A stretch of DNA of 64,000 nucleotides, from positions 8,432,001 through 8,496,000 of the forward strand of contig OZ176050.1 in NCBI GenBank assembly GCA_964247055.1, read 5' to 3'. This document shows positions 750 through 62,710 of the stretch, in pieces. Position 1 is the first letter of the stretch. Every line of letters starts with the position of its first letter. This DNA is from Paragordius varius (taxonomy: Eukaryota; Animalia; Nematomorpha). The position numbers were made by a program, and so were the translations under genes. The notes under the pieces were generated by a model that was not told where the DNA came from, did no database searches, and worked only from the letters and a program-made list of their open reading frames with translations.

Positions 750-1285
750 TACCATTTGCACTTCTAGAGTGTCCTTGAACACTTCAAGTTGGTCCTTGAA
801 CAATTCAAGTTGATCCTTTGACTTTGTTTTGTATTTAACTTTTATCAATCAAATCGTAAATAATATCATCTATTTTATTGTTATTAACCTATTTTCTATT
901 ATTTAACATAAATTTAAAATCGATATCAACTTTTAATCTTTGAGAAACCGTATATCTTTATTAATTTCTTAAAATAATTTTGGATATTTATAAGATTTTA
1001 ACAAGAATTGAAAAATATAGAAGTTTTCTGAGTTATTAATTAAAATTTTTAATCAAAAACATTTAAAAGTCAATAATTTTATTCAATTGAAAAAAAATAG
1101 TTTGAAACAAAAAAGTGGTTTTTCAATAAAATTTTATTTTAAATGAATAAATATATAATAAATAAAGAAAATTAGCTTAAGTAATAATAAAATAAAAAAT
1201 AAATGCAAACATTATGGTTAAATCAAAATTTATAAATTTTAAGGACCAACTTGAAGTGTTCAAGGCTCTAGAAGTACAAATGGTA
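750..1285. mobile_element. MITE family A (TACCATTT termini, TA target-site duplication)
   Basis: Left end TA|TACCATTTGCACTTCTAGAG, right end CTCTAGAAGTACAAATGGTA|TA; subterminal 21-bp repeats CCTTGAACA(C/A)TTCAAGTTG(G/A)T; homologous copies at about 4718-5185 and 60133-60707. Confidence 0.85.
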
Positions 1286-2226
1286 TACACTATAAAAACT
1301 CATAAACTTTATAAAATTTATGGATGATGTTATTTGAATCTGACTAGGTTTATATGAATATTAAAATAATTAGTAACCGCTGTTTGTTTCGATTGGTGGA
1401 AAAATTATTGCTTTAACGAGTGTTTATTTAATGTCATTAACAATTTGATATCTCCATAAAATAAAGTGACCAGATAGGCTGTTTTTCGCAGTACAGTACT
1501 GGGTTTTCGAAAAAAAACCGCGCCCGTACTGCGCTGACTTTTGTACTGCTTTTTGAAATTTTATAAATATGTTTTAATTAGCATTTATTCATACAAGTTT
1601 TGTTTGTAGAATTCGATAGAGTAACCTTAGTTAAAATAAATAAATGGTTTTTTTTGCTCTAAAAAACTCTGGCTCTTAATTTCAATATTTAATTTTTTGC
1701 TTTAATTATACATGGAGTTGGGTTTTGGACCGGTCAAATCGCTTATGAATGCAGCCATTCGCGAAATGGCAGAACTATCAATATTCCAGATTTAGGCCAA
1801 CCTTTCACTCAGGGCTTCCGCAAAAGCGACCTCAAAAATAAACACAAAATAAAAATATTTTAGTAATTTGATCTTTTGAAAATTCATTTTTGTTTCATAT
1901 AGGTTTCAGCTAAATTAAATTTGTTTGAGTTTACTTTAATTATAATTATCAAACGGAAAATTTTTATATTTCCACAACATATTATTTAAATTCAATATAT
2001 TTGGTTTCGATATAATTCTTTTTTTCTAGGAAAAAAACAACTTTTTTATGTTTTGGGTGGGAGGTTTGTTCCTTAATTTTTTGCTTCCCTAAACTTTAAT
2101 TTGTATCCAGTTTTCTTTTAATTCTTTTGTGCATAAGCAAATTAGACCTATTTTAATTTTGGCACACATACACACACACACATAATAATTTTTTTATTAA
2201 TTCTTTTCATTTTAATTTTCTTTTCC

Positions 2227-2400
2227 GTGCCTTTTCTTATAAACAAAATATGGACTATGGAAAAAACACAACTCATAATAGATACCTTGAAAGTAATTGT
2301 AATAGTCAAAAATACAGAAGAAAATTGTGAAGCTTTTTTAGATAAAATTTCGCAAAACCATAAATTATTGGGACAATTACATAAATCTGAAAAATATATA
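2227..2400 (+). pseudogene. hAT transposase C-terminal remnant
   Basis: Translation LINKIWTMEKTQLIIDTLKVIVIVK...NCEAF...NHKLLGQLHKSEKY resembles the hAT dimerisation-domain tail (W-T-x-E-K/R...LL-x-x-I-H-x-S-x-KY); lies inside the 1462-3267 element. Confidence 0.65.
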
Positions 2401-2779
2401 TTTATTATTTTTAGATATTATTACTATTATAAAAAAATAATTATTTATTAATAATTATGTCACGTCATATACCATTGATTGGGTAGACTCAGAACTATTT
2501 AATCATTTTTAAATTTTACACTGTAGCAAAGTCGGCATTTAAATAATTTTCTATCCATTCACCTATCTTTTTTTCATCAACGCATAGTTTTACCTTCTGT
2601 CAAATAGTCATTTTTTTCAAAAAGCTATGGAAACTTTCATAAGATCGTGTGTGAATGATTTTATCTGCACGGCAACATCTTATAAAAACCAGATATATTG
2701 TTTCCCTCTATTTTTATCATCATATATTTGGTAATAATATTGTTTTTGACAATTAGTATTTTTTAAAACTAACATACCA

Positions 2780-3000
2780 TTATAATCTATATATTTATAA
2801 AAATGGAAAGTAGTGGCTTGGTGATCTATTTCCGGGAAACCGGTAGATCCATTCAAATCCAAATGTCGAAAAAATAAGATCATTAATGAATGCCTCGACA
2901 ATAGCTTCGCCTTTTTTTGAATTAGGCCCCCAGTTCGGGCCCACCCCGTGTAAAATACGTTTTTTTTAAAACAGAAGTCCACAAAAATCGTGTCTTTGAC
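2780..3000 (-). repeat. Dispersed repeat (second copy about 9140-9335), weakly IS630/Tc1-transposase-like
   Basis: Near-collinear copies of ATGAATGCC..ACAATAGCTTCGCCTTTTTT..ATTAGGCC..CAGTTCGGG; minus-strand translation IFVD..FYTGWARTG..HSLMI..LDLNG loosely recalls the first DDE block. The repeat is clear; the protein assignment is weak. Confidence 0.5.
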
Positions 3001-4232
3001 ACAATCTGGAAAACGTGTTGGACCATTCAATTTCAAATATGATTTTTGTTTACTTATTTTCGATTGCGTTAAACATAATCGGCTCGTTTTTTTAATTAAG
3101 GCCCTCTTTTTTTTTAATAAATTTAATATTTCAATTGTTTCTAATGAGCTTATAAATAGTAACGAACAATATTATTTAATATAAAACACCGAAAATCCGG
3201 TTAAAAAACAGGCAAAGTATGTTTTAATTTTGTACTGCACCAGGGTTCTAAATATCTGGTCACATTACCATAAAATGATTTTTTTAACAATAAAGCAGAC
3301 GCCAACTGATTATGGAATTATACATTTCTCTGGTTTTTTCAAATATACAACACTTGTAATAAACTGGCAATCAAATGTACAATCAATACCCTTGAACCAA
3401 CTAATTAGTTTTCGTGCAAGGATGTGCCCTTACCTCCATTTATTAACTTATTGTTGAAGCATCTATCTAGGAGCCTTACCATTTTCAGTGGACAATGTTT
3501 TCATACAATTATTTTTACAACATAAATAATCTGCTGAATACCGTTAAAGTGAATGTTGAAGCAAACTCCACCAGTCATGATTGATACTAAAAAACCTATC
3601 GCTAATCAACGTAATAATTTTGCATTTTTTTGCGTTATACTTTTTTAAAAGTTTGTATCCTTGGCACGCCTTGGTGCTTAACTTGGGCTAACTCACCAAA
3701 ATTTTGAACAATTTATTAAAAATTATTATCCAAAATAACATCCCCAAAGCAACGGTTTATGTTGCAGTAGAATCATAATATATCTACTGATAAATCCCGT
3801 GTTGTTTGACAGTTTAAAATTTCATGGAGAGCTGGCACCAAATTTTTGCTCGATCTATCAAAAATCTATGTCGTATAACACGATCCAATTTGTTGTATAA
3901 AAACATTATTCTGGGTTTAATTGAAATCGCAATAGATGGAACCCTAAACCATGTTGGTTGTGCTTAAATCAGCAGTCATCCTCAAAGTTCCTCAAACGGT
4001 TTGCGTTGCACTAGATTGTCCAAAATGAATATTTATGAGAAAGCTCAGGGATTGGTCAAAAATGAAGTCTTATTTTTAACAATACACATAATCAATAATA
4101 TGGCAATAAAAATAAAAATTAGTACTGTAATGCGATATAGCTTACGCATTTGTCACGCCATGTTCATAAAGCTAAATTGAATAGGAAAATAACAATATAT
4201 ATCATTAGGATATGTAAATTAATAAGTATGTA

Positions 4233-5685
4233 TACCATTTTTCATGCAAAAACATCATTTTTTCAACCAAACGCACCATTTTTTCAAGCAAACGCAACAT
4301 TTTTTCAACCAAACGCACCATTTTTTCAAGCAAACGCAACATTTTTTCAAGCAAAGACAACATTTTTTCAAGCAAACGCAACATTTTTTCAAGCAAACGC
4401 AACATTTTTTCAACCAAATACAACATTTTTTCATCCAAACGCAACATTTTTTCATCCAAAGACAACATTTTTTCAAGCAAAAACAACACTTTTTTTAATA
4501 GTACAAAAAATTACTATTAATTGTATGACAATTTAATTATCATATATTTATTAAATTTTAAGTTATGTAATTTATTTTTAGCGTTGAATTATGATTTTTA
4601 TCGTTTTATCATCAATTTGATGGTAAATTAATTGATTTTCAAACCATAAATTGCCTAATTTATTTATATTAATTATATTTTTCTTTTACAACTTTAGTAC
4701 CGTCTATAATCAATTTATATAATTTGCACTTCAAGAGTGTCTTTGAAGCTTTAAAGTTATCCTTCGCTTAAATTTGGTCCTTACATTTTTTGCAGTTTGC
4801 ATACAACCGTAATTATTGTATGTATCTTTTTTAAATTTAACCTAATATATATCTTTATTTATTAGTGTTTCATTTTAATAAAAACAACTTTATTTGTTTC
4901 GAGCTTCTAAATATTACAATCAATAACCCACAAAACTTAGATATTTTTTAATATAGTTATAAAAATTTATAGAAATAATAAGGATGTACGGTTCTTATGA
5001 AAAAAAAGTTGCTATTTATTTAATAGTTTAGGTTAATAAAGAGAATAGGTTAAAAATGATAGGATAAATATATTTTATTACCTCATTAATAAAAGGTAGA
5101 AACAAAATTAAAATATTGAAGGACCAACTTGAAGTGTTCATCGACCAACTTTAAATTTTTAAAAACACTCTTGAAGCGCAATATATTGATTAGGTGAAAC
5201 TAAAGTTGAAATATGGGCAAAATCAAAATGTTTGAAAATCAATTAATTTACCATCAAATATTGATGATAAACGATAAAAATCATAATTCAACGCTAAAAA
5301 TAAATTACATTAACTTAAAATTAAATAAATATATTATAATTAAATTGTCATACAATAAATAGTAATTTTTTGTACTATTAAAAAAAGTGTTGTTTTTGCT
5401 TGAAAAAATGTTGTCTTTGGTTGAAAAAATGTTGCGTTTGGTTGAAAAAATGTTGCGTTTGGATGAAAAAATGTTGCGTTTGCTTGAAAAAATGTTGCGT
5501 TTGCTTGAAAAATTGTTGTCTTTGCTTGAAAAAATGTTGCGTTTGCTTGAAAAAATGTTGTCTTTGCTTGAAAAAATGTTGCGTTTGCTTGAAAAAATGT
5601 TGTCTTTGCTTGAAAAAATGTTGCGTTTGGTTGAAAAAATGTTGCATTTGGTTGAAAAAATGATGTTTTTGCATGAAAAATGGTA
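4233..5685. mobile_element. Foldback-type element with about 490-bp inverted arms containing 21-bp tandem arrays
   Basis: TA|TACCATTTTTCATGCAAAAACATC ... GATGTTTTTGCATGAAAAATGGTA|TA; arms are reverse complements; 11 (left) and 13 (right) units of TTTTTTCAAGCAAACGCAACA. Confidence 0.9.
4718..5185 (-). mobile_element. Degenerate MITE family A copy at the centre of the foldback element
   Basis: Ends TTTGCACTTCAAGAGTGT / ACACTCTTGAAGCGCAA, AAGGACCAACTTGAAGTGTTC motif, interior similar to the reverse complement of 750-1285. Confidence 0.7.
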
Positions 5686-5989
5686 TATATTTAAAATTTT
5701 ACTATGGCCAAATAGCTCGACACAAGAATAAACTTTTTTACATGACAACACCATATTTTATATTTGTTTGAATTCATCCTAAGAATAATAATATTTTCAA
5801 TCATACGAATAATCCATTCTTCAAAGCTTTTTAACGCTAAATTATCGGAAAAACAAAAAATTAACGGACTGAAACAAAATAAACAAATGAAGTACAAAAT
5901 TCATTTATATAATGAAGGCTCCCGGTAAAGAAAACAAAAAATATGTTCGTACAGCCTTGTAAAATCTTTAATATATATATATATATATA

Positions 5990-7215
5990 CACTGTGTTTT
6001 TATGAGATAGCTTATGACGAGCGTATTCATTTGCCGCAAAAATTTTTATTTGTTGACAACCTAGTGTTTTTGAAATATTGAGAGAAAATCGAAATCGGGC
6101 AAAAAGTGAAAATTATGGATTAAGGATAATTCAAAAAATAATGATAAAATTTGAACTATTATGGTTTATTATCATTTTAGGAGATATTTTCAATATATAA
6201 ATAGCCTAAAATAATATAGTTAGGGTTCCTATAAAATTTCAGCTCAAAAGAAGGCGTTTTTCTTTTATCACACTTAAAAGACAAAAAAATTTTAATCAAA
6301 CTATATTAAAATATTTTTTTTAATTATTTACTGCCTAACTCACTATTAAAATCTTAACATTTATATTTTATTCAGTAAAAGATACTTATATATCAAAATA
6401 AAACCAAAAATATTGATATTTATTTTTGCATTTTTTTGTCATCGGGTTCATGAGTGTATAAAAAATTTATACTGTTTTATTTTGGATTCTTACATGAGTG
6501 GGAATTATTCAGTATATAATTTATGCAAAATAGGATTTAAAAGTAGTGGAATATCATTTAATAATCCTTACAAATCCTTGTAACAAGTCTGTTTTATGAC
6601 AAATTAATATTTGTATTGGGATTTGTACGGATAGGTAGATTTTCCACTACTTTTAAATCCTATTTTGCCTAAAATATTTCGCACTCATGTTAGATTCCAA
6701 AATAGAACAGTATAAATATTTTATACACTCACAAACCAGATGACAAAAAAAGTAAAAATAAAAAACAATATTTTTTGGTTTTATTTTGATATATAAGTTT
6801 TTTTACTGAATTAAATATGGATGTTAAGATTTTAAAAGTGAGTTTAGCTAGTAATGAATTAAAAAATATTAAAATAGTTTTATAAAAAAAAATTTGTCTT
6901 GTGAATGTGTTAAAAGAAAAACGCCATCTTTTGAGCTGAAATTTTATAGAAACCCTAACTATATTATTTTAGGCTATTTATATATTGAAAATATCTCCTA
7001 AAATGATAATAAACCATAATATCTCAAATTTTATCATTATTTTTTGAATTATCCTTAATTTACACTTTTTGCCCTATTTCGATTTTCCCTCCATATTTTA
7101 AAAACTAGGTTGTCAACAAATAAAAATTTTTGCGGCAAATGAATACACTGGTCATAAGCTATCTCATGAAAAAAATTTCGTTTAATCAAAATGACCTTCT
7201 TTTTTGCACACAGTA
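5990..7215. mobile_element. Near-complete palindromic (long-TIR) non-autonomous element
   Basis: Starts TA|CACTGTG, ends CACAGTA in a (TA)n tract; about 590-bp arms are reverse complements, separated by a spacer of about 40 bp near 6590. Confidence 0.8.
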
Positions 7216-7225
7216 TATATATATA

Positions 7226-7420: not shown

Positions 7421-9345
7421 ACACAGCTCAACAAGGTTTTGCACCACCCCATTTTTTGCACTTTAAGATATCTAATGGGATAGAAAGGCCAAATCAAAAA
7501 AAATTTTAAGGCCACCAATAGGATTTTTCCAAAATTCAATTTTTAATTTTGTATTTAATTTAAAAGAAACAAGCATTCCTCGTGTTGTTTAAATATTTAA
7601 ACGAGCAAGATACAAGTAACATCCAGGTATTTTCATATTATTTTAGTACGAAAATGCAAAAATGATCCAAATATATTTTGCATCTGTTGTGGTAAATATA
7701 TATTTAACAAAAATAACTTGCGGAATATCGATGTTAATACTGGAATTTTTACAAAATATTTTGATACCAAAATTGATAATGACAGAGCATGCCCCCCCCC
7801 CCATTTTTTCTTACGAAGACTCTACAGAATTATTGGTGATCCATTAAATAAAACTTTATCTGAAAGTTTATCTTTATATTTAAAAATATAAACTGCCTAA
7901 AAATGCTGCTTATTCATAAAAAATCTTGAAAAAGATTCAGCCTCATTCATTTACTTTCAAAATCATTATAAACTCAGTAAAGCCAAAGCTGAGGCTAAGA
8001 TAGCTAATGGACCTTTAATCAAAAAATTTTTACAAGATAACTATAAACCTATTATTTGCAAAGGAAAAAAAGCCTTTGAAGCTTTAAAAAAATACAACAC
8101 AGGCGCATCATATATATTTAAATATTAGGATCACATAAGTCTTAAAAGTATAAAATATTAGGCCAGGAGCTTGTAGAAAGTTACCATAGGATGGGTACAT
8201 TATTTTATTAGGCTGTAAAATGACTATGAAGCTACGAAAGATTCCCGTATTACGGAAAGCGAGCAACTCGCACAATATTTCTGATTTTATCTGGAATTTT
8301 ATTGCTACAATTATTATTTTAAATATATACAATAAATAAATGTTTATTTTATTGAATATATTAATTAAAAATTTGTAGTTAAAAAGAAAATGAAAAATAA
8401 ATTTAATATGTATTTATACAATTTTTTGTGAAAGCTACAAAGATATACGAATAAATGGATATATAGACTATAATCAACACTAAAATACAAAAAATTTATT
8501 TGCATTAATAACAAAATTCTAGGCATTAAATAAAATGAGATACTAAACAAGCTAAGCCAAAGTATTAAAAATCTAAAAGGGCTAAAGTATGATGTGATAG
8601 ATCCTGGCGGCTTGCACAAGCTCTGCCTTATCCCCAAGCGATCCTATACAGTCAATACAAAATAAGAATATTTGTAAAAAAGATTTAAATATTAAGAGTA
8701 AAGCAATGAATATTTATAAAAAGAAAAAAACAAAGGGCCATAGTGTATGTGCAAGCACAACCATGCCCATTAAATAATAATTATTTACTATTAAAGAAAA
8801 AAGGAAAGGAAAGGCATTTACTGAGTATATTTTATACCATTACCATGCCCCTATCTACGTGCCAGCATTACCATGGCCATTAAATATTAATTATTTTTTT
8901 TACTAGTTATGTAATACCATACCATTACCATGCCTATATCACTGGAAAGAATAGATTTACACAATTTTTTTTTCATATTACAAGGGTGAATGATAAAAAT
9001 TTAAATAATACGAAGCTGCAAACAATTGATTTAAGAGCCGATTTAAAATATTTGAAATTCGACTCAACTTTTGTTATAAAAATTATAGAAATAAAAAAAT
9101 TTATTAAAAAATGTGCAAATAAAAATAAAAATATGCTCATCTTTTTATAAAAATGGAAAATGCTGGCTTTGTGATCAGTTTCCGGAAAACCTGTAGACCC
9201 ATTCAAATCCAAACTTCGAAAAAATATAATCATTAATGAATGCCCGACAATAGCTTCGCCCTTTTTTAAATTAGGCCTCCAGTTCGGGTCCAACCCGAAT
9301 AAAAAATTTTTTTAAAATAAAAGTCCACAAAAATAATTTTTTGAA

Positions 9346-13455: not shown

Positions 13456-15513
13456 ATGTCAGCTTCAAAATTTATGCAACATTTTATCAGGGGAGGTTTG
13501 GGTCAAAGCATTTGTTTATATCTTACCAAGAGTCCCAATTCGCAATTAATACGAACATTTACGAATAATGCAAGGTCTGCTATTCAACCTGGTATTAAAC
13601 GACGTAGTTTAAAGGAAATTTTATTGGCACCTGCCGGACAAGGAGGTTTTTAGTTAATATATTTCAAGCGTTTACGTTGGGTCGTGGTGCTCTTATTGGT
13701 GGATCTGCTTTAGGACTTACGGCTTTATGCTATTATGGATTAGGACTATCCAAAGAAATAGGGGCTATTGATAAAGCAATGTAAAATTATAGTTAATAAT
13801 ATTTAGCGTATGGCCTAAAATTGTTAAAGAACGAATACAAAACACATATCTTTATTTTGGTGGTAGCCTTTTATTTACAGCAGGTTCCGCATATTATGTT
13901 GCTAGAAACGCTACTTTAATGAATATGTTTGCCAGGACATCGCTTTTAGTAAAATTTAAATAATATAAATAAAAAACAATTTTTCATATTTTAACTTATG
14001 AAACAGTAAACAAAATGATCATTTATTAATTTTTATTATAGTTAATTGGTTTAACTTTTGTTGCTGTGATTGATCATTTATTAATTTTTATTATAGTCAA
14101 TTGGTTTAACTTTTGTTGCTGTGATTGCAAGTGGTGCATTATGCAGATCCATTCCATACAATTCCGAAAACTTTCTTGTTAAACACGGCTCATGGATTCT
14201 TCACAACGGTGTTTTGGGCGCAATGGTTGCCCCCATGACGGTCCTTGGTGGCCCATTAATTTTAAGAGCCGCGGTTTATACGGCTGGGATCGTTGGAGGT
14301 TTATAATTTTACTCTATATAATATACCTATAATTACTGTTAAATAAACCATAATAATTTTAGGACTCTCTATGGTTGCTGCATGCGCTCCAAGCGATAAA
14401 TTTTTGACAATGTCTGGACCGCTGGCTATTGGATTGGGAACTGTTTTTGTGGCTTCCTTGGGTAAATATTAGATAAAATACTGATAATTTAGGCTTTTTA
14501 TATTTTATTACATTTCGCTAGTATTCGCAACAATAATTGGCTTGTAGTCGAAAAACGATATTTAGTTTTGTCATGTCTCTGTATGGATAATTTATTTAAA
14601 AAGGGCGTCCTATATAAATTTTAATAATATTGGGCAAAAATTTATAGTTTATGTGATTATATTTTTTAATAATATTGGGTAAAATAATATATATATTCCA
14701 GAAACCTGTCTAGGCCTTTTCCCTTACATTATGTTTTCTAACTTTTGGTACAATAGCTACAAATTACACATAATTTTTGTTTGATTTTATATTACATATT
14801 TTCCAAAGTATTTATCATATCTTTATAGAGATTTTTATTTAATACTTGTCTTTGTTCTATGTTTATAATGGAGACCATTTGTTCATATATTATATATGTT
14901 TTATAGGCGGGATGTTTTTGCCTCCAACCACAGCATTGGGTGCTGGTCTCTATTCCATATCTGTTTATGGCGGTTTGTTACTTTTTAGCGCATTCCTGCT
15001 TTACGATACGCAAAAGATTGTTAAATTGGCCGAAAATTATCCTACTCACAAAGGCGTTACACCATTCGACCCTATAAATGCGTATGTATTACCTAAAATT
15101 ATATAACATAACGGATCTTTACTCATTTAATTATTAGATTTGTTTAGTAGTATTTTCCCAACAATGTAATCTTTAAATGTGTAGCTAAGCTTTTTAACAA
15201 AATTTTAACTTAAATTTTTTAATACGGCGATTATCTTTGTCAATATATTATGCAAGAAGGGTTAATTCAAAATTCAACCATTAAGATATCAGACGTATAT
15301 CTAAGTGATAATTATTTTTTAGTACCTGATTTTATGACTATAAAAATGTCAAAAGCACTGATGAATGGATTAATAAATGCACATACAATTCATTATGGTT
15401 GTAATTTTATTTATAATTTTTGTTACAGATCAATGGGCATATATCTGGATACACTAAATATCTTTATGAGATTAGCCATGGTATTGGCTGGTGGATCTAA
15501 CAAACGAAAATAA
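13456..15513 (+). CDS. GHITM: Growth hormone-inducible transmembrane protein (mitochondrial Bax-inhibitor-1/TMBIM5 family), 7 exons, 334 aa
   Basis: Exons 13456-13645, 13669-13780, 13807-13948, 14097-14298, 14363-14461, 14907-15081, 15429-15513 join in frame; motifs ALCYYGLG..EIGAIDKA, VWP..VKERI, AAVYTAGIVGGL, FLLYDTQK, DPINA, IYLDTLNIFMR. Confidence 0.95.
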
Positions 15514-21700: not shown

Positions 21701-24700
21701 TCAACTTAACTTTGCATATAAGGGTGGTGAAAATTTACGTGCTAAAACTTTAAAAATAACCAAGGGGATGCAACTAATTAGCGTTACCACACTAACTTTC
21801 CACACAAAAGTCAATGAGCTACGTAACACGAAATCGCGGTCAAAATATTGTTCACGAAATACTACGAGAGTCAGGAGATAAACGACCAAACTAAACATTT
21901 CAGCCGATATAATGGCCCAATGTCTCCATCGTCTGACGGTTAAAGCGACCATAAGTAGTTCATTAAAGATGAGTGCTGTAAAAGTTATGGACACAACGTG
22001 GACGAATTCATCCTCAAACAAAAGGAAAGCTCCAAACATTATGACACTCCCTGTTGTAATATAAAAAATTAAATGTTTATTTTACCAGATTAATTAGTCT
22101 AAAAAAGCGTTAGATCAATCTGAAAAATGTTATAAATGTATATGATATATTGACACAAAAACGATAACGCATTTTTAATCATGGTTAAACATGTATAACC
22201 AACATGTAACAGAAAGGTAATTTTCATATAAAGGCCAAAAACCTAAGAAAATGAAATTGTTGAAAGAATTTTTAGATTTACAATTCAAAATTACTCTTGA
22301 ACAATTCAAATTCACCCTCGTACAATTCAAAATCTACCTTAAACAATTTTACCCTTAAAAATTCAAATTCACCCTTGAACAATCAAATTCACCCTAAAAA
22401 TAAAATGTGTGTTTTCGGGCTAATATAACTCACCATTAATAAGAAATATATTCTTATAGCATGGTTATTATTTTTTCAGTATTATATTAATTTTAAAGTT
22501 TCATTTTTTAAATATATATAAAATAATATAGGTAATTTTTAATTTTAAAGAACACATAATTTATTTTAGGGTGATTTTGAATTGTTCATGGGTGAATTTG
22601 AAATAAAGTGTAAATGGTATATACATAAGAAAAAAATAAGGAATCAGATGAAGAAATTATTCTCCTCAAACGTTATGTCAGAAGACCGTCGTTTTTTTCA
22701 TCATTAATTTTGGTTATGTATGGATATGCTATCTTTATACATTAGCGATAATATATTTAGTAAAATACGGTAAATTTATACAAAAATAACACAACACTGC
22801 AAAAAAATTAGGTAAAAAATTTATCCATAATTAATTAATACTCTTTCCTTTTATTTTATTTAAAAATAAAACGCCATCTATTTAATACCTTGATATATGC
22901 TAATAAGAACCCATATGAAGAATGTCTTGTATGAAAGAGCACGGCCCTAATAATAATAAAATATTTTTATAATTTCATGTATTAAAATGATTTTAGTTTG
23001 AGTCCATTAACTTGTCAACATTGTGGAATTCAATGAATAATACGATGAAATAATTAATAATTTTTATATTGGTGTTAAAAAAAACAAAAATAAATTTCAA
23101 TTAAATAAACAAGAAATTTAACACTTTTACTTTAACTAAATCTTGATAAAGTTCAGGATACATCATAGCTGTTTGAGGAGTTATATCTCGGTCGAGAATA
23201 ATGGAGAAAACCGGAAACATGGTGTATATTGTGGCATAACTATAAAATAAAAAAATTATATAATACAATGTTCTTTTTTAAATTATTATCGACATAAAAT
23301 ATTTATTACCCGATCATTAGATATCCCTGATAAAGTGCAACGGAAGCAAAGAAAAATATGGCGGAAAAAATGGCTTGCATGGTAGAAATAATGAGTCCGC
23401 GATGAATTATAAATTGACTAAGAGCGGCACTTCTTTTATAGCTATAGCGTCCATGAACTAGAATTAGGCGAGCTAAGAAGAAATATTGGTTCATAAGTAA
23501 AATAATGTGAGTAATCGTTTTTATTTGAGATGTCTGCTACCTTTAAATAAAAAGTATTTAAAAAAATGAATCCATGTGTTCCCTTTTAAATTATTTGATA
23601 AAATAAATTAATAGTGTATCTTAAGGGCTGTTAACCATTTTAATGCAAAACTGCAACATTATGATATTGGTCAAATATGCAAATAATAATTTTATATTTT
23701 AACTTATCATCTTAAATCTGGATTAGGAAAAAATAATAATACGGTGAAATTTAAAATTCGAATTTTTTTATACTAAATGTCATTATAGACCAAAGTAAAA
23801 ATCGGACAATAGAGTTATATTTATGTTGGCACTTTTGAACAAATATAATATTGAAGAGTTTTAATCTAATTTGTTTATATCATACTCAAATGTGAAAATT
23901 GACAAATGGAAAAATCAGCAGCCAAAGATGCCTGTTTCCCCTCTTTTCCGGCGATGCCGACACCAACATGGGCTGTTTGAATCATACTTACGTCATTTCC
24001 TCCATCCCCAATAGCCAAGGTTCTACATTTTGTCATTGCATTGCAATTACACCAATCTTGGTCGTTTGAACTGGGAGCGATATTGCCATCATGCATAACT
24101 TTAACATATAATAAAGTAAAATGAATATATAGTTTAAAATCTATTTTTTATATATTTTTCAATAAATAGAATATGGATTTCGTTTTGATTTCAGGCTCAT
24201 GAAAGGTGTAAAACGCTAGGGCGGGCTGACAGCCAAATGATGGAAAAATTGTACAGTTTTGGGCTCAAAATACTATCATATGTTGATACTTAAGACCTTA
24301 ATGGAAAAATAATATTGCTTAATCTATATAATATATATTGGCTTGATACCATTGGTATTAAATCTAGAATATATGTAAAGAAAGTAATTAGCAGGATTAT
24401 ACAATTGGTTAACTGAAAAAAATGCGAAAGATACGACACACATAAGTGACCTTAACATTATTGCATAACTTATATATAAAAAACAAAAACACTACTCTGT
24501 GTGTCATGTTTTGGACAGCATCCAACGCAACAACAAAACATCCGTTTACACAAATTTGTTTCATACAAAACATTATTGTTTGTCCTTCTTGCACTTGTTG
24601 TTAAGGGAGGCGAATTATCTGTAAAAAAGTAAATGTCAAACAAAATATGTCATACTTTTGTGTTTAATGGCATGCGGTTTGGTATGGAGGTAATAGGATG

Positions 24701-37163: not shown

Positions 37164-40100
37164 ATGGAATTTTTGTATGAGTTGCCTACCCTGATTGGTA
37201 TCCTGAAAAAACAGTATCAAAAAATTATTTATGTTAGTTATTCCGATTTTCAAGTTTTTGAAATCGATACCGACGGAAAGTACGTTAGTCAAATATTGGA
37301 TTCCACAGTTCCCATAGTAAAACAAGATAATGAAAATGATAAGTTTTTATACGAAAAAGAGTGTGATTTTATTAACCAAAATATCACCGAAATATTCAAA
37401 ATTAAAGTTTAATAAAAAAATAATATCAGGTTAATGGTATGTCTAAAAGTTCCAGAAAGAGCGTTCATCAATGTGTGCGCAAATTATACCTGAACTTAAG
37501 AAGTGCCACTATGGATATTGACGATGAAAAGTACATTATGATCTATCATAAGGGTATAAATGGATTATTATTTTAGATAATGTAAATATTGTTCCAAATG
37601 ATCCAAAAGATAATAGGTCTGTTCCCAAGTATCTTCGTTTTATTCTTTACAAAGAAGGCATAGATACTCACATGGCTATAATGAAAATGGCACGTATACT
37701 TGGAATTAAGCAATCTAGATTTTCTTTTGCCGGTAATATTTAATAATTTTTATTATAAATTCTTTAGTTTTTTGCACTCTATATATTTTTATTGAACTGA
37801 ATGCCCTTGGGAAATGTTATTCGCCGACGACCTCGTGATAACGACACGATCATGGGATCAAATGATAAATACATATACCAAGTGGAAGAAATGCCTTGAA
37901 CAATATGGAATGATTATAAACGCCACAAAAACAAATATAATGATAACGGGTAAAAGTGAAACACCCAGATACCCCTGTTCCATTTGCAGTAAGGAAGTAC
38001 GTTCAAATTCCATTAAATGCATATCATGTCAAATGTGGGTACACAAAAAGTGCTCTAAAATAAAAGACAAATTAACAAATGTAATAAATTTTAAATGTTT
38101 AAATTGCTTAGACCCAAGCAATAATAATTTTAATCGACCAAAGCTACTTAACATTGATGGACATGACATCGAATTGGCAGACTCTTTTGTATACCTAGGA
38201 GATGTCATATCATTTTAGGGAAGCCCACAAAAGGCTATCAAAAGAAGAATACAACAAGGTTGGATAAAATATAATCAGCTAAAATTTTTCCAAAAACAAA
38301 AATGTTAACAATCGTAATAAATGGTATCTTTACAAGGTAGGAATAAGACCTGCTCTTACCTATGGTTCTAAAACCTGGGCATTAAACAAAACAAATCAAA
38401 TAAAACTCCTAACCAGTGAGAACCGAATACTCAAAAGCTGCTTTCGCATACCAGAATTACCAATTTTCATTAAAAAAAACCGATAAAATCGATTATATAA
38501 TTCAAACTAACAGATTGCGTCTATACGGTCATACTTAGAGAAGAGACGCCACCCATCCGTGAAAACATTAAAGTTGATGGCAATAGAAGAAAGGGACGAC
38601 CACTCTTTTCTTATAATGATAATATAAAAATGGACTTGAATCAACGTAGCCTTTCCACAGAACAATGTAAAGATCGTAATTTATGGAGGAAACTACTTCG
38701 TGGATACAAAACTCCGAATATGGAGTCCTAAAATTATCCATCTATTCATTAATTATTGGAGTTAGGTTTTGGATTGTTTAAAATAGAATAATAATTTGCC
38801 TGACCGCTTTCAAAGGCATTCATTTAGAATTTCGAATATATATTGTAAATTAAAAAACAAAATTTACCAATCAAATAGGTTTTATTAGACCCAATCAATG
38901 CATTTATTTTTTCAATCAGCCCTGTAAATGGTGCCTTCTGTTGATAAAAGAGTTATACTTCATGATTATTGGAGCGAATTATTATGTATATAATCTTGTG
39001 TCTAACTAATGATTCTTTAGGTCATTTTAAAACTGGACACCGCGTTAAAGTTGCAATAGAACTCCGTTGGCCAATTTTTCATTTATTCTTCGATTGAAAG
39101 ATACAATATTTTTATTTTAACTGATTATTTGATATCGATTGCCTATTGTGTATTGTCCTTATATAATTTTGCCATTTTTTAAATTATAAATATATAAAAA
39201 ATATATTTTTTTTTATATATTTAAGGTACCAAGGATAAGCGTGCCATATCAACCCAAAATGTTTGCGTTTTTAAAATAGCTGCGGAACAGCTAAATTCAT
39301 TAATCAACAATTATAAAAATAATTATAACATTCATAAAAACTCTTCCGAATCGGGACCTAATACAAATTCCCCAAATCACGAAACTGATGTTTTGTCAAA
39401 TGATAATGAAAGTAATTTATATTGTGACGATGTAATGCTTAACCGTGAGAACACAGAAATTATGACTGAAGAGAGTATTGAAATGGAAAATGGCGATTTA
39501 TCAAACAGTACTGTTTTAGAGGAGGAATCATTTCATGGCAAAGGATTTTTTAAAGTTGGACACTTTAAGTATGACACTAAGCCTTTGAGTTTGGGGGAGT
39601 TGAATGGGAATCATTTTCGCATCATAATTAGGTTTCGATACATAATCATTATATACTCTTAAAAATATATCAGTTTATGATTACATTATACATATATATT
39701 TTGTAAGTTTTTATACGACAAAATATTTTTTTATTTTCCTTTTTGTTATCTATGCCTAATTTATAATTTAGAAATATGCAATTTTTCGAAGCGCAACCGC
39801 AATCACATGACTGTTCACATTGTAATAATACTCTCAATTGTGATTGTATCAAGAAAGCAGTAAAAGCAACGCTAGAAAATTCGGTTAACACTATAAAGTG
39901 CTTGGGATTCGTTAATTATTTCGGTACTCAACGGTTTGGGATAAATAATGACACGTGTATAACTGGCAAATACCTCATAAAAGGGGATTATGGTCAAGCT
40001 CTGGCCACAATCCTTGATCCAAATAAACCAAAACTCATACCGGAATTAAGGCATTACCTGCTACAAAACGTATCCTGGTACAATCAACTTAAAGCAAAAC

Positions 40101-43100
40101 AAAACACACTTATATTTGGTGGGATTGATCATACGCTACCCTTTTATATGGAATTACCTGGTGATAGATTTTGGTCAAAATTGGCATGGCCAAGCATGTC
40201 AATGATCTCTAAATCACAATTTTTGACATCTCTTGAAAAGTTTTATCGGCATGCATATCCCAAAAATTATAACGATGATAATGACCAAAACCCTAACACT
40301 GCTATGGATAGCGTAAATACTTCCAATGAATCAAATAATGAAACATGTGATCTAAATTACAACTCTTTACCGCAACCTAATTTTGTAAGTCATTCTACAA
40401 ATTCTGTGCCCCACCGTAAAATACGAGATAGTATTGAATATCGTGTTATAAAAGCACTAACCACGTATGGCATTAAGGATGTATTGAAAATCTTCAATAC
40501 AGCTTTGCATCGTAACTTGCGTTTACTGTATGTCCACGCCTATCAAAGTTATATTTGGAATCGTGTTGCAAGCTTTATTATATCAACGAGACGGAAAAGT
40601 ACTGGCTCCAATATGCAAAATGATAATAGTGATAGTAATAGAACTAAGGAAGAAATCCTAAACATTGATAAAATATATGAATTGAAAGTTGGGGATATGG
40701 TGTATGATAACGATGTTTGTTCTCAACATTGTCCTAATAATGGTATGATATGCATAATAATGATGTAGATTTTTCATTAAATTCTTAAAATTTCGTTTTT
40801 TGAAGAATTTGAAATTATATAATTTTTTATTGATAACAAATTGCTTTTCAATACTATTAACACAGGTAAACCCTTAAATTAAAATTCTAATAAATCCCTA
40901 GTTTCGGTTTATTCTGTTTTTTTGTATTGCTTACAATATAAAAGTTTCAAAATATTATGAATTGTTAACTAAGTCGATTACAATCTTATTAACCGATTAT
41001 CATTATAATTTAAATTCTGTGCTACACTCTTTATATGAAGGACAGAGAGAATTATTCCATAATATATATATAATTGCCTTTGTTTGGAATTCGTTATCAC
41101 TGTATTTACCAATTAAATATATATTACCCATTTTATTTTCCTTTTTTTAACTAGCTATATTTTTTGCAATTTTAGAGGTAGAAGCCTATACCAACGCCCC
41201 AAAGGCAAAAAAATTGAAAAAGGACATAAAAAATGATGGATTAAATAGGTACAAACCATCGATTGTACGTGTAACGGATACGAATTTGTCCAAATATTCA
41301 TTTTCAGATATGGTCATCCCTTTGCCTGGCTTCGCTATTGAATATCCATCTAGTCCAGATATTTTAGGCGCTTATAAAACCTATCTTGCCTATGATGATT
41401 TAAGGTTTTTTGAATGAAATATTTTATTTTGGATATATTAAATTTTTTTTCTTTTAAAAACGCTAAATATTTTGTTCAATAGTATAAATGATTTTAAGCA
41501 CAATGTCAAAACGTTATCCCTACCCGGTGATTATAGAAAACTCATTGAACGGCCAAAAGATATGGACGCTTCGATTTTAAGTAAATCTTTTGTAAAATTA
41601 GACACCTAATACTGCTTTTATATAGGCAGGAAATGTATTAGGTCAAAAATATGTCATATATGACAGTCTGAAAGAACTCAATCAGTATAAACACCTTTTT
41701 ATTAGAAACAAAAATTTAATTAAACGTTTAACGTGTCTTTTAATATGCTTAATAGTTAGTTTAAATATCCTAAATTAGATAATAAATTTTTTATTTAACT
41801 GCAAATTAATTATAATACAGGTTTTTAAATATTTTTGATAAAAGTTAACCACAAACCCGACTTCTCTATGAAAATATCATATGTAACCATGGATATAAAC
41901 CTGCTTTATAAATAGTTTTTTTAAACATAAAAGCCTACATTCTGTTGGCTATGCTCTATCTCACCTGCCTAGTGTAAAGATAATTTTTTTATGAATATTA
42001 AAACTACGAATCGGTATCACAAAATGAAATTATTTTTTTATCGGGATGAATTCGTAACAACTTCTAAATTTTTATTGACTCTTAATGAATATTTATTACA
42101 ACATATCTTTAAGAGGACTGAAATTTAAAAATCTAATAGTTTTTAAATTAATATATATGCATATAAATATCTTTTATTTTGTTCATTTGTCGCTATATAT
42201 TTTGAGAATTGGCCAGATACAACGTAATTATATTTTACATTAAAATATGTATTTTTTAGCTTAATATTTAGAGGTGTTTATAATTACTCAAAAGACTATA
42301 AAATTTATTAAACATCTTTTTATTATGGTTGAATCTAACAGAGAAAATTAATATAACTGCTATTTAAATATCTTTCATTTATTATTATTATGGTATAGTA
42401 GGTAGGGCGCCGGACTCTTACACTGCGTGCCTGAGCTCGAACCCCGAAACTACGCATTTTTTCCATCATCACTGTCAGCCCTGGGCAGGCGAGTGTTAAA
42501 GCCTTCACAGGTCCTGATACAATTTAAGTCCTTACCCTTTAATAAAAAAAGGAAGAAAGAGACTCTAAACTGTATATTTTATATATAGGTATTATTGGTT
42601 TGGCCCAGTTATTGGGATTCCATGGATTAATTTACGGTATATGTCTCTATCATTTGTTGCGTTTCGAGGTATGTTCAGGAATTTAAAGTCTTGTTCTATG
42701 ATTTGAGTCCAAGTTGTTTTAGGCCTCCCTTTACGGTTGGGGGCAGGAATCTGTAAATCAAGAATTTCCTTTGCAGGTGAGTCTATACTGGATCTGTCTA
42801 TGTGTCCAAAATACCGAAGTCTATTTGTTCTGATAAAAGCTGTTATTGGTTCTAGTTCAATGGTAGGATTTATCATCATATATTTTATCATTTTATCTTC
42901 CGTTCTTTTCAATCTCGATTCTAATGTTTTTGTGATTGCCCAGGTTTCGCTGGCGTAGGTAAGGGTAGGGCGGACACCCACTTTATACATTTTGATTTTA
43001 TTTTTTACGGTTATGTCTTTATGTGTCAATACATATTTGAGTTGGTTAAATTTTGCCCAGCCGAGTTTGATTCTATGTGATATGGTTGTTTGAGGGTCCC

Positions 43101-44988
43101 CATTATTATTACTGATATTACCTAAATAGGTGAAATCGTTGACGATTTCGAACCTACAATCTTCGATACTAAACTCCCTTGTTTTAGGGATGTTTGGTTT
43201 CCCTGATATACATCTTTGGCATTTAAAATTTTTATTGTCGACTAATTTTCCTTTCAAGTTAGAACATTTTTTATGAACCCACATTTTACACGATGTGCAT
43301 AGAATGGAATTTGTTTTAACCTCGTTGTAACAAATGGAGCAAGGGTATTTTAAGGTCCTTTTTTCATCACCTGTGATCATTACCTTCGTCTTTTCTATGT
43401 TTATTTTTAGCCCATGTTTTTCGAAACAGTTATTCCATTTAAGGTATGAGCTTTTCAGTTCATGAGCTGTTTTTGCTGTTATAACCAAGTCGTCAGCATA
43501 CAGCATGTTCCATGGTGGAACAGCTGCAAAGTCTCTGCTTATGTAATCCATTATTATTATAAACAGTTGTGGGCTTAGTGTTGAGCCCTGATGGAGTCCT
43601 ATATTAATATTAAAATAATTTGTGTTTCCGACTGGTGTTTTAACGCAGCTTTGTGCATGTTCATACAGGAGCATTATTAATTTTATTAAATATTCCTCGA
43701 TTTTTTGATACCTTAATGCCTCAATTATGAGGTGTCTGGGTATTGTGTCAAACGCTCTTTCCAGATCTATAAAGATGTGGAACAGCTTATGACCTTTTGC
43801 AAGGTATTTTTCTTGTAGGCGATTTAAAATAAAAATGGGTTCCGATGTGCTTTTACCTTCTTGAAAAGCAAATTGATTTTTATTTATTGTTATATTTTTG
43901 ATTCTATTTTTGATAACTGTTTCAAAGATTTTCATTCCGTGCTCCAAAAGTTTTAATGGGCGGTAGTTGGAGCAATCAAGGGCATCTCCTTTATTTTTAT
44001 AAACGGGGTAAATGTAGCTTTTGTCCCAATCGGTTGGTATTGTGTTGCTTTTGTATACCAAATTAAACAGCTCTACCAAAAATTTAACAGTTATTGGTGT
44101 GGCCTTCATTAAATCTGCAGAGATCTCAGAGGGCCCAGTGGCTTTGTTAGATTTCATGTTTTTCATTACTATTGCTATTTCGTCTGGAGTGAATTCCTGA
44201 ATGGGGCCTTGTATGGCAGGATTTTCATGTGTAGTAACCTTAGATTCAGGGGGGTTAAATTTAGTTTTCATAAATTTTTCCCATCTGTTTATTATGTCGT
44301 TGGGATTGATAAGAATATTATGTTCATCATCTTTAACGCAACGAATATTTTTGATATCCTTTTGGTTTTGATTGTAGTTTTTGATTTTTCTAAATATTGT
44401 CATATTATTTATGTCCTTTTCCAGCTCGTCTGCCATTTCCATACAACGTTTATTTTTTAAATCCTTAATAGTTTTGTTCACCAGTTTTTTGTATTGATTG
44501 TATATGATTTGGTCTTCATTATTTTTTGATTTCTTCCATTTTTTATGTAGCTCGTTTTTTTCTCAGGAGTAAGGGTTTCACACTGTCATCCCACCACCAA
44601 TTGGGTTGTCGCGAACTTTTCTTTTTCCTTCCACACCATTTTTCAGCATTATTCATTATCGTTTGTTTGTAGTTTTTCCATCTAATAAATAAACACCTAA
44701 TAGCCATTATTCAAAGAAATGACAATAGAGTCAAATATCAATAATACTTTTATTTCATTTTAATTTTTAAGTTCTTTACCTATTTATAACTCATCTCTTA
44801 TTGATGATGTTATATAGAGAAATATCATATTTGACTATATTATTAACTTTTACATTATTTAAGGTGATTGTGATTATCCAGATTCTTTCGATGTCTCATT
44901 GCAATTCTCACTCCCACCATCGTCATACGCAACTGTTTGCCTTAGAGAATTAATGCATCAACATGAAACTTATCTTGTGCATTTATAA
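37164..44988 (+). CDS. PUS7: Pseudouridine synthase 7 (TruD family), multi-exon
   Basis: GILKK(H)YSDFQVFEID, YLRFILYKE, FAG|TKDKRAISTQ (catalytic Asp, about 39226), GFVNYFGTQRFG, YVHAYQSYIWN, DMVIPLPG, LPGDYRKLI, FSLPPSSYATVCLRELM; start codon and penultimate exon(s) not fully resolved. Confidence 0.92.
37801..38730 (+). mobile_element. 5'-truncated, frameshifted RTE-like LINE fragment (PHD-finger RT family) in PUS7 intron 4
   Basis: PWEMLFADDLV..INATKTNIM, then CSIC..CISC..H..C..C..C, FVYLG; downstream VRPALTYGSKTW-like and LRLYGHT..GRP motifs in broken frames. Confidence 0.85.
42391..42577 (+). mobile_element. tRNA-derived SINE (head resembles tRNA-Lys CTT)
   Basis: A-box-like TGGTATAGTAGG, GACTCTTA anticodon-arm remnant, B-box-like GAGCTCGAACCCC; about 130-bp body shared with 45337-45503. 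Confidence 0.7.
42590..44685 (-). mobile_element. RTE-like non-LTR retrotransposon, 5'-truncated, with an intact 629-aa RT-region ORF (42592-44481)
   Basis: KATGPSEI, PVYKNKGD, NYRPLKLL, NQFAFQEG, FIDLERAFD, GLHQGSTLSP, YADD, FTYLG, LRYFGH, GRPKTTW; upstream NWWWDDSVK linker in a shifted frame; no endonuclease domain left. Confidence 0.93.
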
Positions 44989-59422: not shown

Positions 59423-60881
59423 ATGTCCACAATTTGCCATGAATGCGAAAAAATTGTTTATCATATGGAGAAAATAGAGGCTAACCGATATGCCTACCAC
59501 AAACAATGTTTTAAGTGCAAGAGTTGTGGCATAGCTTTAACGTAAGATTTAAAGTTTTAATCCATTTTATTTATAATTGACTGGATAAGGCATTTAATAC
59601 TTTTTTCAAGCCCATTTATATAGAATTTATATATTTTTTTAAATAAAGGGAAATAGAACAAAGTTTTATAAATAAACCAAAATAGATTGATTAAATAATA
59701 AATATTTAAAAATACTTAACAAAAAATAGCAATATAAATATATGAATGTCAATTTTTTGATCAATTTATTTAATTAATTAATTTTTGAACCAAAAAAAAT
59801 ACGTATGAATAAATATACACTGGTTTTATTCCAAATAGACCGCAAAGAGCAATAATATTGGCTTAAAGCTATTTTTTTATTTTTCATGTTTTTCATCAAT
59901 AATAATTATCTTTGCTGTATATCTGGCAGTAATTAGTAAATCAGTTGTGAAATCGCTGTTTTTAGATTTCCTTTTCATTTATTAATAGTTTTATTAGTAA
60001 TTCAAACGAAAAATACTTTAGTTTCTTATACATTTATGATCCTAATTATAGCAACGCAACTCAGGATGCTAATTTATTTTGTAGAGTTTTATGAAAATTA
60101 ACCAGACAATACCGAGTTTGTGTGTTATAATATACCATTTGCACTTCAAGAGAGCACTTGAACATTTCAAGTTTCTCCTTGACATAAGTAGATTTTTGAA
60201 CATTTCAAGTTTCTCCTTTAACTTTTTTGTTTTGTTTTAAACTTTTATCGATCAAATCGTAGGCAATTCATCTATTTTATCATTTTTTAACCTATTTTCA
60301 ATATTTAACATAAACTTTAAATCAATATCTTAATATTCATTCAGGAACAAAATATTATTAATTTCATATAAATTATTTTAAATATTTATAAGATCATTAA
60401 AAAACATACAAGATTCCTGGGCTTTTATTTACAATTTTTCTTAAAAACATTTATAAATTTATGATTTTGTTAAATTGGATAAAAAGTAGTTGAATCAAAA
60501 AAGTGGTTTTTGAATAAAAAATATTTTTAAATGAATAAATATATAATATGTAAAGAAAATTGGAAATATAAAAATACAAAATATATGCAAAAATTATGGT
60601 TAAATTAAGCTTAAAAATTTTACGGACCAAGAGAAAGTTTTTCAAAGAACCAACGTGTGTTCAAGGACCAACTTGAAATGTTCCATACTCTTGAAGAGCA
60701 AATGGTATATATTGTCATTAATATAAAAGTTTTTATGTGCAATAGATTGCAAAATTATGGATCATACAATAATAATTTGTTTTGCAAGAACAAATGCTTC
60801 AAACAAATTTGGCAGCCACACGCCCAACTTGATGGAGTTAGCCGCGTCAAACCAGTTTCGTCCATAGAATCTCAAAATTGA
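59423..60881 (+). CDS. Single-LIM-domain protein, CRIP-like, 2 exons, 84 aa
   Basis: Exons 59423-59541 and 60746-60881: C-x2-C-x17-H-x2-C-x2-C-x2-C-x17-C-x3-C, the CRIP1-type ligand spacing. Confidence 0.85.
60133..60707. mobile_element. MITE family A copy in the LIM gene intron
   Basis: TA|TACCATTTGCACTTCAAGAG...CTCTTGAAGAGCAAATGGTA|TA; interior collinear with 750-1285. Confidence 0.85.
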
Positions 60882-61140
60882 TTTTATGCATTAATATTTC
60901 ATGTTAATTAATACATAAATTTAGGTGTTTTGAATAATAAATTTTATCTTATCCATTTACTTATGATTTAATCCAAAATTTATGTAATTTTATGATTGAT
61001 TGTTAATAAGCTTAAATACTGATGAGAAATGATCACTATTGGTGCATGGTTTTATTTTTATGTTTTGAACTTTCTGTTTAGTTCATTATAGAATAATTTA
61101 AATATTTATTTCAGGGATCTTACAAATATAATAATTATAT

Positions 61141-62710
61141 TTATAGCACTAAATTAGTGTCAGATGATTTGTTGTAAAGCTTGAAAAATTCCGGTTCATA
61201 AACAAGTATCGGGTCTTTCGTTTTTGTGTGCCACACTAAAATCTAATTTATAAAAACATAATTGGAAATTTTTATATACCTTTTGTAATTCAAATTCACC
61301 CTTAAACAATTCAAATTCACCCTCGAAATTTAAATTCAGCCTAAAAATAAATTATGTGTTTTCGGCCTAATATAACTCATTATTACAAAGATATAAAATC
61401 TTGTGGCATAGTTTATTATTTTTTCAGCATTATATTAATTTTGAACGCAATTTCTTTTTTTTAATAAAAAAATATAGGTAATAGCAATTTTTTATCTTAA
61501 ATACACATAATTTATTTTAGGGTGAATTTAGATCATTCAAGGGTAAATTTGAAATGTTTAAGGGTGAATTTGATTTGTAAATGGTATATAAGATATGTTT
61601 TAGCAAAATTTATGAACCTCGGTACAGTTATTGGCTAACGGCTCTAAATCGTTAAGTTCTCCCAATTGTTGCACAAAATCATTTTCCAAACCATCTAAAA
61701 TAAAGATTATTACATGAATACTACCAATTTAACACTTATTTAAAATTTATATCGTATTTATCGTGTTTTTAGGGGCATTATCTAAGATTGAAGATATTTT
61801 TAGCACCATCAATAATTAAAAAATATTTGATCCTAATAAAAAATTATTTTCGATAACCAAGAGCTAACTTTGAGCCTCCGAGAATAATGTATTGATTTTT
61901 TTATTTTAGTATTTATTTTTCAAGGGATTCGTGACGCCACAAAATAATTTTTACCAATCTATATATTTGGAACCATTTTTCAATGTTTTTACGAAACCCA
62001 AAATAATAAAATCTATAGATGCTTATATTACTTTCATTATCATATTCATTGAAATAAAGGTTGGGATGATCGTTAGTAAGCAGTTTTAAATTGACCGCAA
62101 AACCGGCCATGTCAAGAGCCATTTTCCGTTCTTTTTTCATGTAAATTGCAAGCCAATCCACAACTTTTCCTTCAACAACCAAGGGCCTTTCAACGTATAA
62201 GCCTCCGGCAAATGCTACAGGCCAAACCCCGATCCTTTTCACTTTGCGCATCTATTTTGTGTTTTTATGTAAATAAAAAAATAAATTAGTTGAATGCAAT
62301 AGTAAGTTTTCAAACAATTTTTTGGAAAAAATACCACCCTACAAACCCTTTTAAAAAGCACTTAACTAGATATGTATACCATAATTGCTCTCAATTGTGT
62401 TTGCATGAGCTTTATAAATTATCTACGAATATTAAATGGAGCTTTAAAACATTTATTTTAAAATATAAAATACCTCTTCAAAGAGTTTGAGATCATATGT
62501 GTTATCGTCATCCGCAAAGTAGACCACACAATTTTCTGGTTTTAGCTTTTCAGCATGTCCAATCATAAATGTATTCATATTTGACCAATTAAAGCTGAAT
62601 CTTTGAAATCGATCGTTTGCAAAATTTTTATTGTTTAGAAAAAAAATCCATTTTCTTAGCCATGATAAAGCCATGTTTCTTTGGACGCATCCTTTATATG
62701 GCAGGTGTTG
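61141..62710 (-). CDS. B3GAT: Beta-1,3-glucuronosyltransferase (GT43, B3GAT/GlcAT-like), 3' part; 5' exons probably beyond the window
   Basis: Exons 62474-62710, about 62032-62251, about 61617-61694, 61141-61243: G.VQRNMALSWLR, VVYFADDDNTY, GVWPVAFAGG, DMAGFAVN, DLEPLANNCTE, ILVWHTKT. Confidence 0.9.
61277..61586. mobile_element. MITE family D copy in a B3GAT intron
   Basis: TA|TACC(T)TTT..AATTCAAATTCACCCTTAAAC repeats; right end GTAAATGGTA|TA; homologous to 22272-22619. Confidence 0.8.

Follow-up and report, generated by a model that had tools for sequence, protein, structure and literature searches.

Hairworm element families with a common terminus as probable derivatives of separate, related DD34E transposon lineages

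We examined a 64,000-nucleotide stretch of the genome of the hairworm Paragordius varius (contig OZ176050.1, positions 8,432,001 to 8,496,000 of the forward strand; G000:C1:8432001-8496000; hereafter the window), in which three families of transposable elements, A, D and the foldback family F, have unrelated-looking interiors and identical ends. These families are probably non-autonomous deletion derivatives of three separate, related lineages of IS630/Tc1-type transposons with a DD34E transposase, all belonging to one clade. Their ends are shared because each family descends from its own member of this group of related cut-and-paste transposons. The clade, which comprises four lineages when a further one, E, is included, has diversified within this animal's lineage. 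A first-pass annotation of the window had suggested that A, D and the foldback may be one system moved by a single transposase. The first part of that proposal stands, as the coding partners form one DD34E clade; the second is not supported, as each type of 21-bp repeat unit is linked to its own transposase lineage and the enzymes are 45-62% identical. We observed directly the anatomy of the elements, the linkage between 21-mers and transposases, the TA target duplication, the phylogeny and the clade-wide layout.

Element ends, 21-bp arrays and copy number

The window is AT-rich eukaryotic DNA (G+C, 23-37%). The terminus TATACCATTT occurs in it eight times against 0.94 expected (positions 748, 1278(-), 4231, 5678(-), 22612(-), 60131, 60700(-) and 61579(-)). 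All eight matches lie at previously named element ends, and none of 100 shuffles of the window sequence, used as the control for this count, reached eight. Genome-wide counts refer throughout to the 110.5-Mb assembly and were compared with control patterns; TATACCATTT was found at 9,315 sites, compared with 1,822 for the control pattern. The elements and arrays are as follows.

750-1285: family A miniature inverted-repeat transposable element (MITE), 536 bp, TA on both sides, no open reading frame (ORF), ends TACCATTTGCAC...GTACAAATGGTA
771-818 (+): family A array with 2.3 copies of the unit GTCCTTGAACAATTCAAGTTG, which is CCTTGAACAATTCAAGTTGGT when phased from the end
4233-5685: foldback (family F), non-autonomous, 1,453 bp, TA-flanked, arms of ~470 bp
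4238-4495 (+): left F array, 12.2 units of 21 bp, in-register unit CATTTTTTCAAGCAAACGCAA
4718-5185: central part of the foldback, A-like but diverged, belonging to the family F master copy
5382-5680 (-): right F array, repeating the left F array in inverted orientation, 14.2 units
22272-22619: family D MITE, right end intact (AAATGGTA then TA), left end (~22274) mutated
60133-60707: family A MITE, 575 bp, TA-flanked, both ends intact
61275-61586: family D MITE, right end intact, left end mutated (TACCTTTTGTAA)
62775-63031 (+): relic of one family F arm, decayed 21-bp units, no terminus; F unit matches at 62789-62902

Tandem Repeats Finder placed arrays next to the ends of all three families, which bears out the subterminal 21-bp period described earlier. 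Arrays of period 21 were reported for family A (759-818 and 60157-60226) and the foldback (4238-4495, 12 units; 5382-5680, 14 units); for family D, 22282-22401 was scored as period 21 and 61287-61348 as period 19. A scan of the window with the unit consensus, allowing up to 4 mismatches, gave matches confined to the elements already listed and none in shuffled sequence. We define the in-register unit as the 21-mer phased from the element end; the 21-mers of the earlier annotation are rotations of these in-register units. Its TTCAA core is present in each unit, at positions 11-15 in A and D, which is the in-register core of the whole clade; in the foldback it lies out of register, at 7-11, and positions 11-15 read AGCAA. 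Of the ends that had been assigned to family D, both right ends are intact and both left ends (~22274 and ~61275) are mutated.

The segment at 4718-5185 had been taken for a family A copy. It is A-like (67-86% identity to the A copy at 748-1287, with an A unit match at 5123-5143(-)), and it was found in 7 of 7 other foldback copies sampled, so it belongs to the F master copy and is not a private insertion. The F relic at 62775-63031 ends at an unrelated repeat starting at 63036.

Read from outside, every end consists of TA, then CCATTT, then 21-bp units in phase, in 12 of 12 lineages (4 in this genome and 8 from metagenomes); element ends read TACCATTT...AAATGGTA. In each lineage the outermost 21 bases are themselves a variant unit, with 13-17 of 21 positions matching the inner consensus, and the array therefore starts exactly at the element end. 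Within one element the units are homogenized, as in concerted evolution. The target duplication was read from a nested insertion with a paralogous empty site: locus L040 reads AAAATA-TA-GCTTTC, and in L045 these flanks enclose an E-type element with TA on either side. The duplication is thus TA, as in the IS630/Tc1/mariner group, and the element proper starts with TACCATTT, both as proposed in the first pass. All 37 sampled copies are TA-flanked with otherwise unrelated flanks, a count that is circular since the search pattern contained TA. For the window insertions at 59800-61900 we sought an empty-site allele; their flanks occur only once, and there is no second haplotype.

Per strand, the genome holds ~830 ends of family A, 880-920 of family D and ~100 of the foldback, with 0-1 for control patterns; the family F copies (~100) are each ~1.4 kb long. 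Sampled A elements measure 337-783 bp and D elements 204-396 bp, without transposase similarity. Both families are MITEs, being short, non-coding, TA-flanked, high in copy number and alike in their ends to a coding element (L043 for A, L029 for D). Sampled MITE copies are of middling age, with pairwise identities that average 80-84% and reach at most 96% (family A: 81% and 96%). Small MITEs have 2-3 units per end (family D up to 6) and coding copies 9-14, within an overall range of 2-27. Four pairs of A-type ends (L001-L004, 1.5-2.7 kb apart) were considered as autonomous copies and rejected; they have no transposase and are A MITEs with other insertions. In a sample of genome sites, elements with TATACCATTT ends also included the fourth unit type, E, and a fifth family, G (G000:C1:1884303, 1903276, 2050106, 2050526 and 2846057), in which the TATACCATTT end is followed by TTATCTCAAA and to which no transposase has been linked so far.

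Transposase-bearing partners and their phylogeny

No transposase or transposase remnant lies in the 64-kb window, in agreement with the first-pass annotation, which had listed no autonomous partner there. A search of the whole genome for DDE-bearing partners, which it had suggested, was performed with Pfam DDE_3 and gave 135 matches; loci around the best ones carry TATACCATTT ends. Partners were obtained in this way for D (L029) and F (L036), and remnants for A (L043).

The family D partner (L029; C9; G000:C9:1405700-1409400, 222-3467) is a TA-flanked element of 3,246 bp and a near-perfect palindrome, in which a 73-nt loop separates two 1,589-nt arms, 100% complementary. Nine D units form the outer end of each arm, which also contains a 316-aa transposase ORF reading outward from the centre. 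Four autonomous copies at four different loci (L029, L030, L031 and L032) are 98.7-99.5% identical, and at the sequence level the D autonomous elements appear young and recently active. The D MITEs of the window resemble L029 in their arrays (22272-22619, 80-86% identity) and ends (61275-61586, 86-91%). A candidate 22-nt GT-AG micro-intron (L029:1972-1993), read by eye, would join a 43-nt ATG exon (1929-1971) to the frame of the 316-aa ORF; the predicted spliced protein of ~352 aa matches the length of its relatives (346-364 aa).

The family F partner (L036; C7) is a 2.5-kb element with arrays at 3490-3776 and 5763-5968 around a 324-aa ORF, and ~470 bp of each arm of the window foldback (4233-5685) match its terminal inverted repeats at 78-83% identity. 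Directly beside this coding copy stands a second family F element (L036, 6013-7775) with an expanded array of 27 units (6020-6586), which indicates that unit number is highly variable. For family A, the partner L043 (C8) consists of a 247-aa ORF remnant between arrays at 4190-4324 and 6518-6715, and the terminus and array of the window MITE at 750-1285 match it at 93-96% over 71 bp; L044 (C8) likewise has A-type arrays around a truncated ORF. The assembly contains no intact A-type gene and only three decayed ones, the longest open frame being 262 aa as against 341 aa for D. The fourth unit type, E, is linked to a transposase lineage of its own in L040 and L045. Coding copies of F, A and E have the usual single-gene layout, and the D palindrome is therefore a derived state.

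Two other groups were considered as partners and rejected. All mariner-type transposases (PF01359) have decayed, and TACCATTT flanks none of them. Members of a second Tc1-like class (L033-L035 and L037-L039) are 23-28% identical to D and have 20-bp units or none, without these ends. Within that class, L033, L034 and L035 (C11, C8 and C3) are ~8-kb palindromes with twin outward-reading genes, and their outer ends carry 20-bp units (CGGACAAATTTTTTTTTATA) without TACCATTT; at least two transposon classes of this genome have thus evolved the twin-gene palindromic architecture.

The enzymes of the clade have the invariant catalytic residues D136, D220 and E255 in our alignment, that is, the DD34E triad of the IS630/Tc1/mariner group. 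They match Pfam DDE_3 at 64-81 bits (cut-off 28.6) and the NCBIfam IS630 model at 113 bits (cut-off 100), and the family profile matches the catalytic domains of Sleeping Beauty and Mos1. The bipartite paired-like helix-turn-helix N-terminus typical of this group was recovered with the family profile, whose positions 14-120 match the paired domains of Pax6, Pax5 and Prd (E-values 2e-7 to 3e-6) and which also matches the first (PAI) helix-turn-helix subdomain of Sleeping Beauty. Single ORFs gave sub-threshold matches to HTH_32 and HTH_Tnp_Tc3_2, because the first exon is missing from them.

Enzyme identities are 62% for D-A, 45% for D-F, 44-47% for D-E and 48-50% for F-E. In a maximum-likelihood tree with named and metagenome relatives, D, A, F and E are monophyletic (support 100/97) and resolve as ((D,A),(F,E)), with support of 100/99 for (D,A) and 91/87 for (F,E). 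The in-register units group as the enzymes do, D and A being identical at 17 of 21 positions and F and E at 14 of 21. Each family thus has its own partner, which the first-pass annotation had named as a result that would count against it; the further expectation attached to that result, partners from different superfamilies, was not borne out, as they share superfamily and clade. The closest proteins outside this genome (38-43% identical) come from Strongyloides papillosus, three microsporidia, Hermetia illucens and further assemblies.

Relatives outside this genome were studied at 80 loci on metagenome contigs, 39 AT-rich and 41 GC-rich, the latter probably bacterial. An array of 20-22 bp period is present at 28 of the 39 AT-rich loci, compared with 2 of the 41 GC-rich ones, and 16 of the 39 have an inverted pair of arrays; 21 bp is the dominant period among AT-rich relatives (49 arrays), the next most frequent period accounting for 9 arrays. 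All eight metagenome loci that include an end read TA|TACCATTT followed by their own 21-mer in exact register. Across the 12 lineages CCATTT is invariant, while enzymes differ at ~60% of positions and inner units at ~46%. Because the same end recurs in distant relatives together with in-register 21-mers of their own, the layout is old and common to the whole clade, and on these comparisons the terminus is an old inherited feature and most likely the part needed for cleavage.

These data bear directly on the original suggestion that a single transposase recognizes the shared terminus and the TTCAA core and moves A, D and F. In its favor, all families agree in their first 8-10 bases, unit positions 11-15 carry a conserved TTCAA-like core in register throughout the clade, and the D lineage alone has several clearly intact, young gene copies. 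We nevertheless consider this very improbable, given that each unit type surrounds its own transposase lineage, that F and D units differ at 11 of 21 in-register positions with enzymes 45% identical, and that the same terminus also occurs in other organisms, on elements with enzymes of 30-43% identity, and so does not mark one enzyme.

A narrower proposal is partial cross-mobilization, in which an enzyme of the D type moves, or recently moved, the orphan A elements, and F and E rely on enzymes of their own. This is possible, if rather unlikely. In its favor are the decay of all three A-type genes, the identity of A and D units at positions 1-15 (4 of the last 6 positions differ), the sister relationship of the two enzymes (D being the closest living relative of A) and the similar number of A and D ends. 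Weighing the other way, the two enzymes have diverged more in the DNA-binding region (52%) than in the catalytic region (31%), and the A copies sampled are not younger than those of an extinct family should be.

Recognition of the ends, and other contents of the window

Binding, lineage specificity and current activity are our inferences. Each 21-bp unit, about two helical turns long, would be one site for the bipartite Pax-like N-terminal domain of the transposase; a single bipartite paired-like domain should take up a site of this size. The terminal bases, which are invariant, would reflect what the conserved catalytic part requires for cleavage, and the remainder of the unit would change together with the DNA-binding domain, in which case each lineage should mainly recognize its own ends. 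The common terminus would then reflect descent and shared cleavage chemistry, not a common enzyme. The phased binding arrays envisaged in the first-pass annotation are accordingly plausible, as predicted sites, from the retention of the period in AT-rich relatives while the unit changes and from the Pax-like bipartite domain. Unit distances correlate more strongly with distances between N-terminal domains (Mantel r 0.67, p 0.0001) than with those between catalytic domains (r 0.48, p 0.03), which is consistent with this model and no proof of it.

Alternatively, the arrays may have no binding role and represent satellite-like expansion of a terminal repeat by slippage or unequal exchange, with the 21-bp period merely inherited. 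The wide range of unit number (2-27), the homogenization of units within an element and the fact that abundant MITEs manage on 2-3 units would all fit such a process. Neutral arrays, though, should drift in period and phase, and here the period is fixed at 21 bp in register with the cleavage end although units differ by ~46% and enzymes by ~60%; the terminal unit is, moreover, itself a unit variant in every lineage. We therefore regard this alternative as improbable.

Several observations weigh against our account of separate lineages, each recognizing its own units. The A and D MITEs, with ~830-900 ends per strand, have so few units that long arrays must be dispensable for mobilization. As A has no intact cognate gene, no living enzyme can be linked to its past amplification. 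The TA duplication is based on a single empty site. Shared ancestry by itself predicts the Mantel correlation, arrays and gene being inherited together, and the metagenome translation L103 is frameshifted, which makes its catalytic distances unreliable.

A bolder proposal, which we consider doubtful, is that the ends are bound by a continuous row of transposases, one per 21-bp unit, all on the same face of the DNA and extending inward from the cleavage site, much like the TnsB rows of Tn7, a mode undescribed for eukaryotic Tc1/IS630 elements, and that the four lineages of this genome and dozens elsewhere form mutually exclusive pairs of enzyme and site with one cleavage sequence. If so, the recognition rules of paired-like domains could be read off the series of pairs.

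Unrelated-looking elements with identical ends can thus be accounted for by a clade that radiated within one genome with its cleavage end unchanged and its predicted binding sites altered in sequence, and this clade accounts for thousands of insertions here. TA and CCATTT followed by in-phase, lineage-specific 21-bp units provide an annotation signature for such elements and their MITEs in AT-rich genomes. The matched sets of related enzymes and sites also offer material for studying the evolution of transposase specificity, and if the lineages were mutually exclusive, such sets could serve as independent gene-transfer tools.

Several further features of the window were recorded. A Ty3/gypsy-type retrotransposon is represented by ORFs at 25355-28482 (-), which encode a zinc knuckle and protease followed by reverse transcriptase, RNase H and integrase; its long terminal repeats are probably marked by tandem repeats of 19 bp at 25188-25242 and 28781-28835. 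In a 629-aa ORF (42592-44481 (-)) a PHD finger comes after the reverse transcriptase domain, an odd pairing for an element without long terminal repeats. The 330-aa ORF at 39776-40768 (+) has a TruD (tRNA pseudouridine synthase D) domain and is probably an exon of a host Pus7-like gene. A 55-bp tandem duplication (two copies, 98% identical) lies at 14016-14127. Finally, a separate repeat family is present at 1466-1560 and 63036-63130, with a 31-mer identical in both copies (0 expected) followed by ~90 conserved bases and an internal inverted repeat, GCAGTACAG...CTGTACTGC; the copy at 63036-63130 abuts and truncates the family F relic.

Comparison with known systems

The family history proposed here is a fairly ordinary transposon story. 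The layout was not found in the literature on the terminus, on tandem subterminal repeats in Tc1/IS630 elements, on hairworm transposons or on Gambol, a search that did not extend to Repbase, Dfam or the Gambol reference.

Direct repeats inside inverted repeats characterize the inverted repeat-direct repeat (IR-DR) group of Tc1-like elements, namely Sleeping Beauty, Tc3, Minos and Bari3. The hairworm elements resemble this group in their TA duplication, DD34E enzyme and bipartite paired-like N-terminal domain (the last by profile match to proteins of solved structure), in having more than one predicted transposase site per end, and in terminal bases conserved beyond the binding site. IR-DR elements have 2-3 sites per end separated by long spacers, in inverted repeats of 200-460 bp with CAGT-type ends; here, 2-27 full units run head to tail from the terminus without spacers, and the end is TACCATTT. 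The elements thus fall outside the IR-DR layout of 2-3 spacer-separated direct repeats, their 21-bp units being contiguous, and also outside the Tc1 family in its narrow sense, defined by CAGT-type ends, as all ends read TACCATTT.

Multiple transposase sites per end are known both from Sleeping Beauty-type elements and from Tn7. The resemblance to Tn7 lies in rows of adjoining or overlapping transposase sites about two helical turns long, the outermost of which is used for cleavage. Tn7, which has several 22-bp TnsB sites, is bacterial and differs in its transposase family, its asymmetric ends and its 5-bp duplication. Multiple binding sites per end are also known in Galileo (PMC3688188). Galileo/Foldback elements of Drosophila fall in other superfamilies (Galileo in that of the P element), with a THAP DNA-binding domain and longer target duplications (PMC3688188, PMC3573991); the hairworm elements differ in their IS630/Tc1-type enzyme and TA duplication. 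On the latter two features, with L036 as the coding partner, the foldback of this window likewise falls outside Drosophila Foldback (FB).

MITE families that have terminal bases in common through related parents are a standard observation. Like Stowaway-like MITEs, A and D are small, non-coding, TA-flanked and high in copy number, and have nothing but the outer terminal region in common with the coding element, their interiors being unrelated to it. DD34E/Gambol (cited in PMC8533490 and PMC3212995) is alike by description: a eukaryotic DD34E group apart from classical Tc1, with long terminal inverted repeats. By the same description, Gambol MITE derivatives keep only the outer part of the inverted repeats; such Gambol-derived MITEs are known in Anopheles gambiae (PMC3212995). 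In Aedes aegypti, three MITE families were born from one Tc1/mariner element (PMC3814204). There, several families have one parent, whereas the hairworm families stem from one parent lineage each and are connected only in that those parents share an ancestor.

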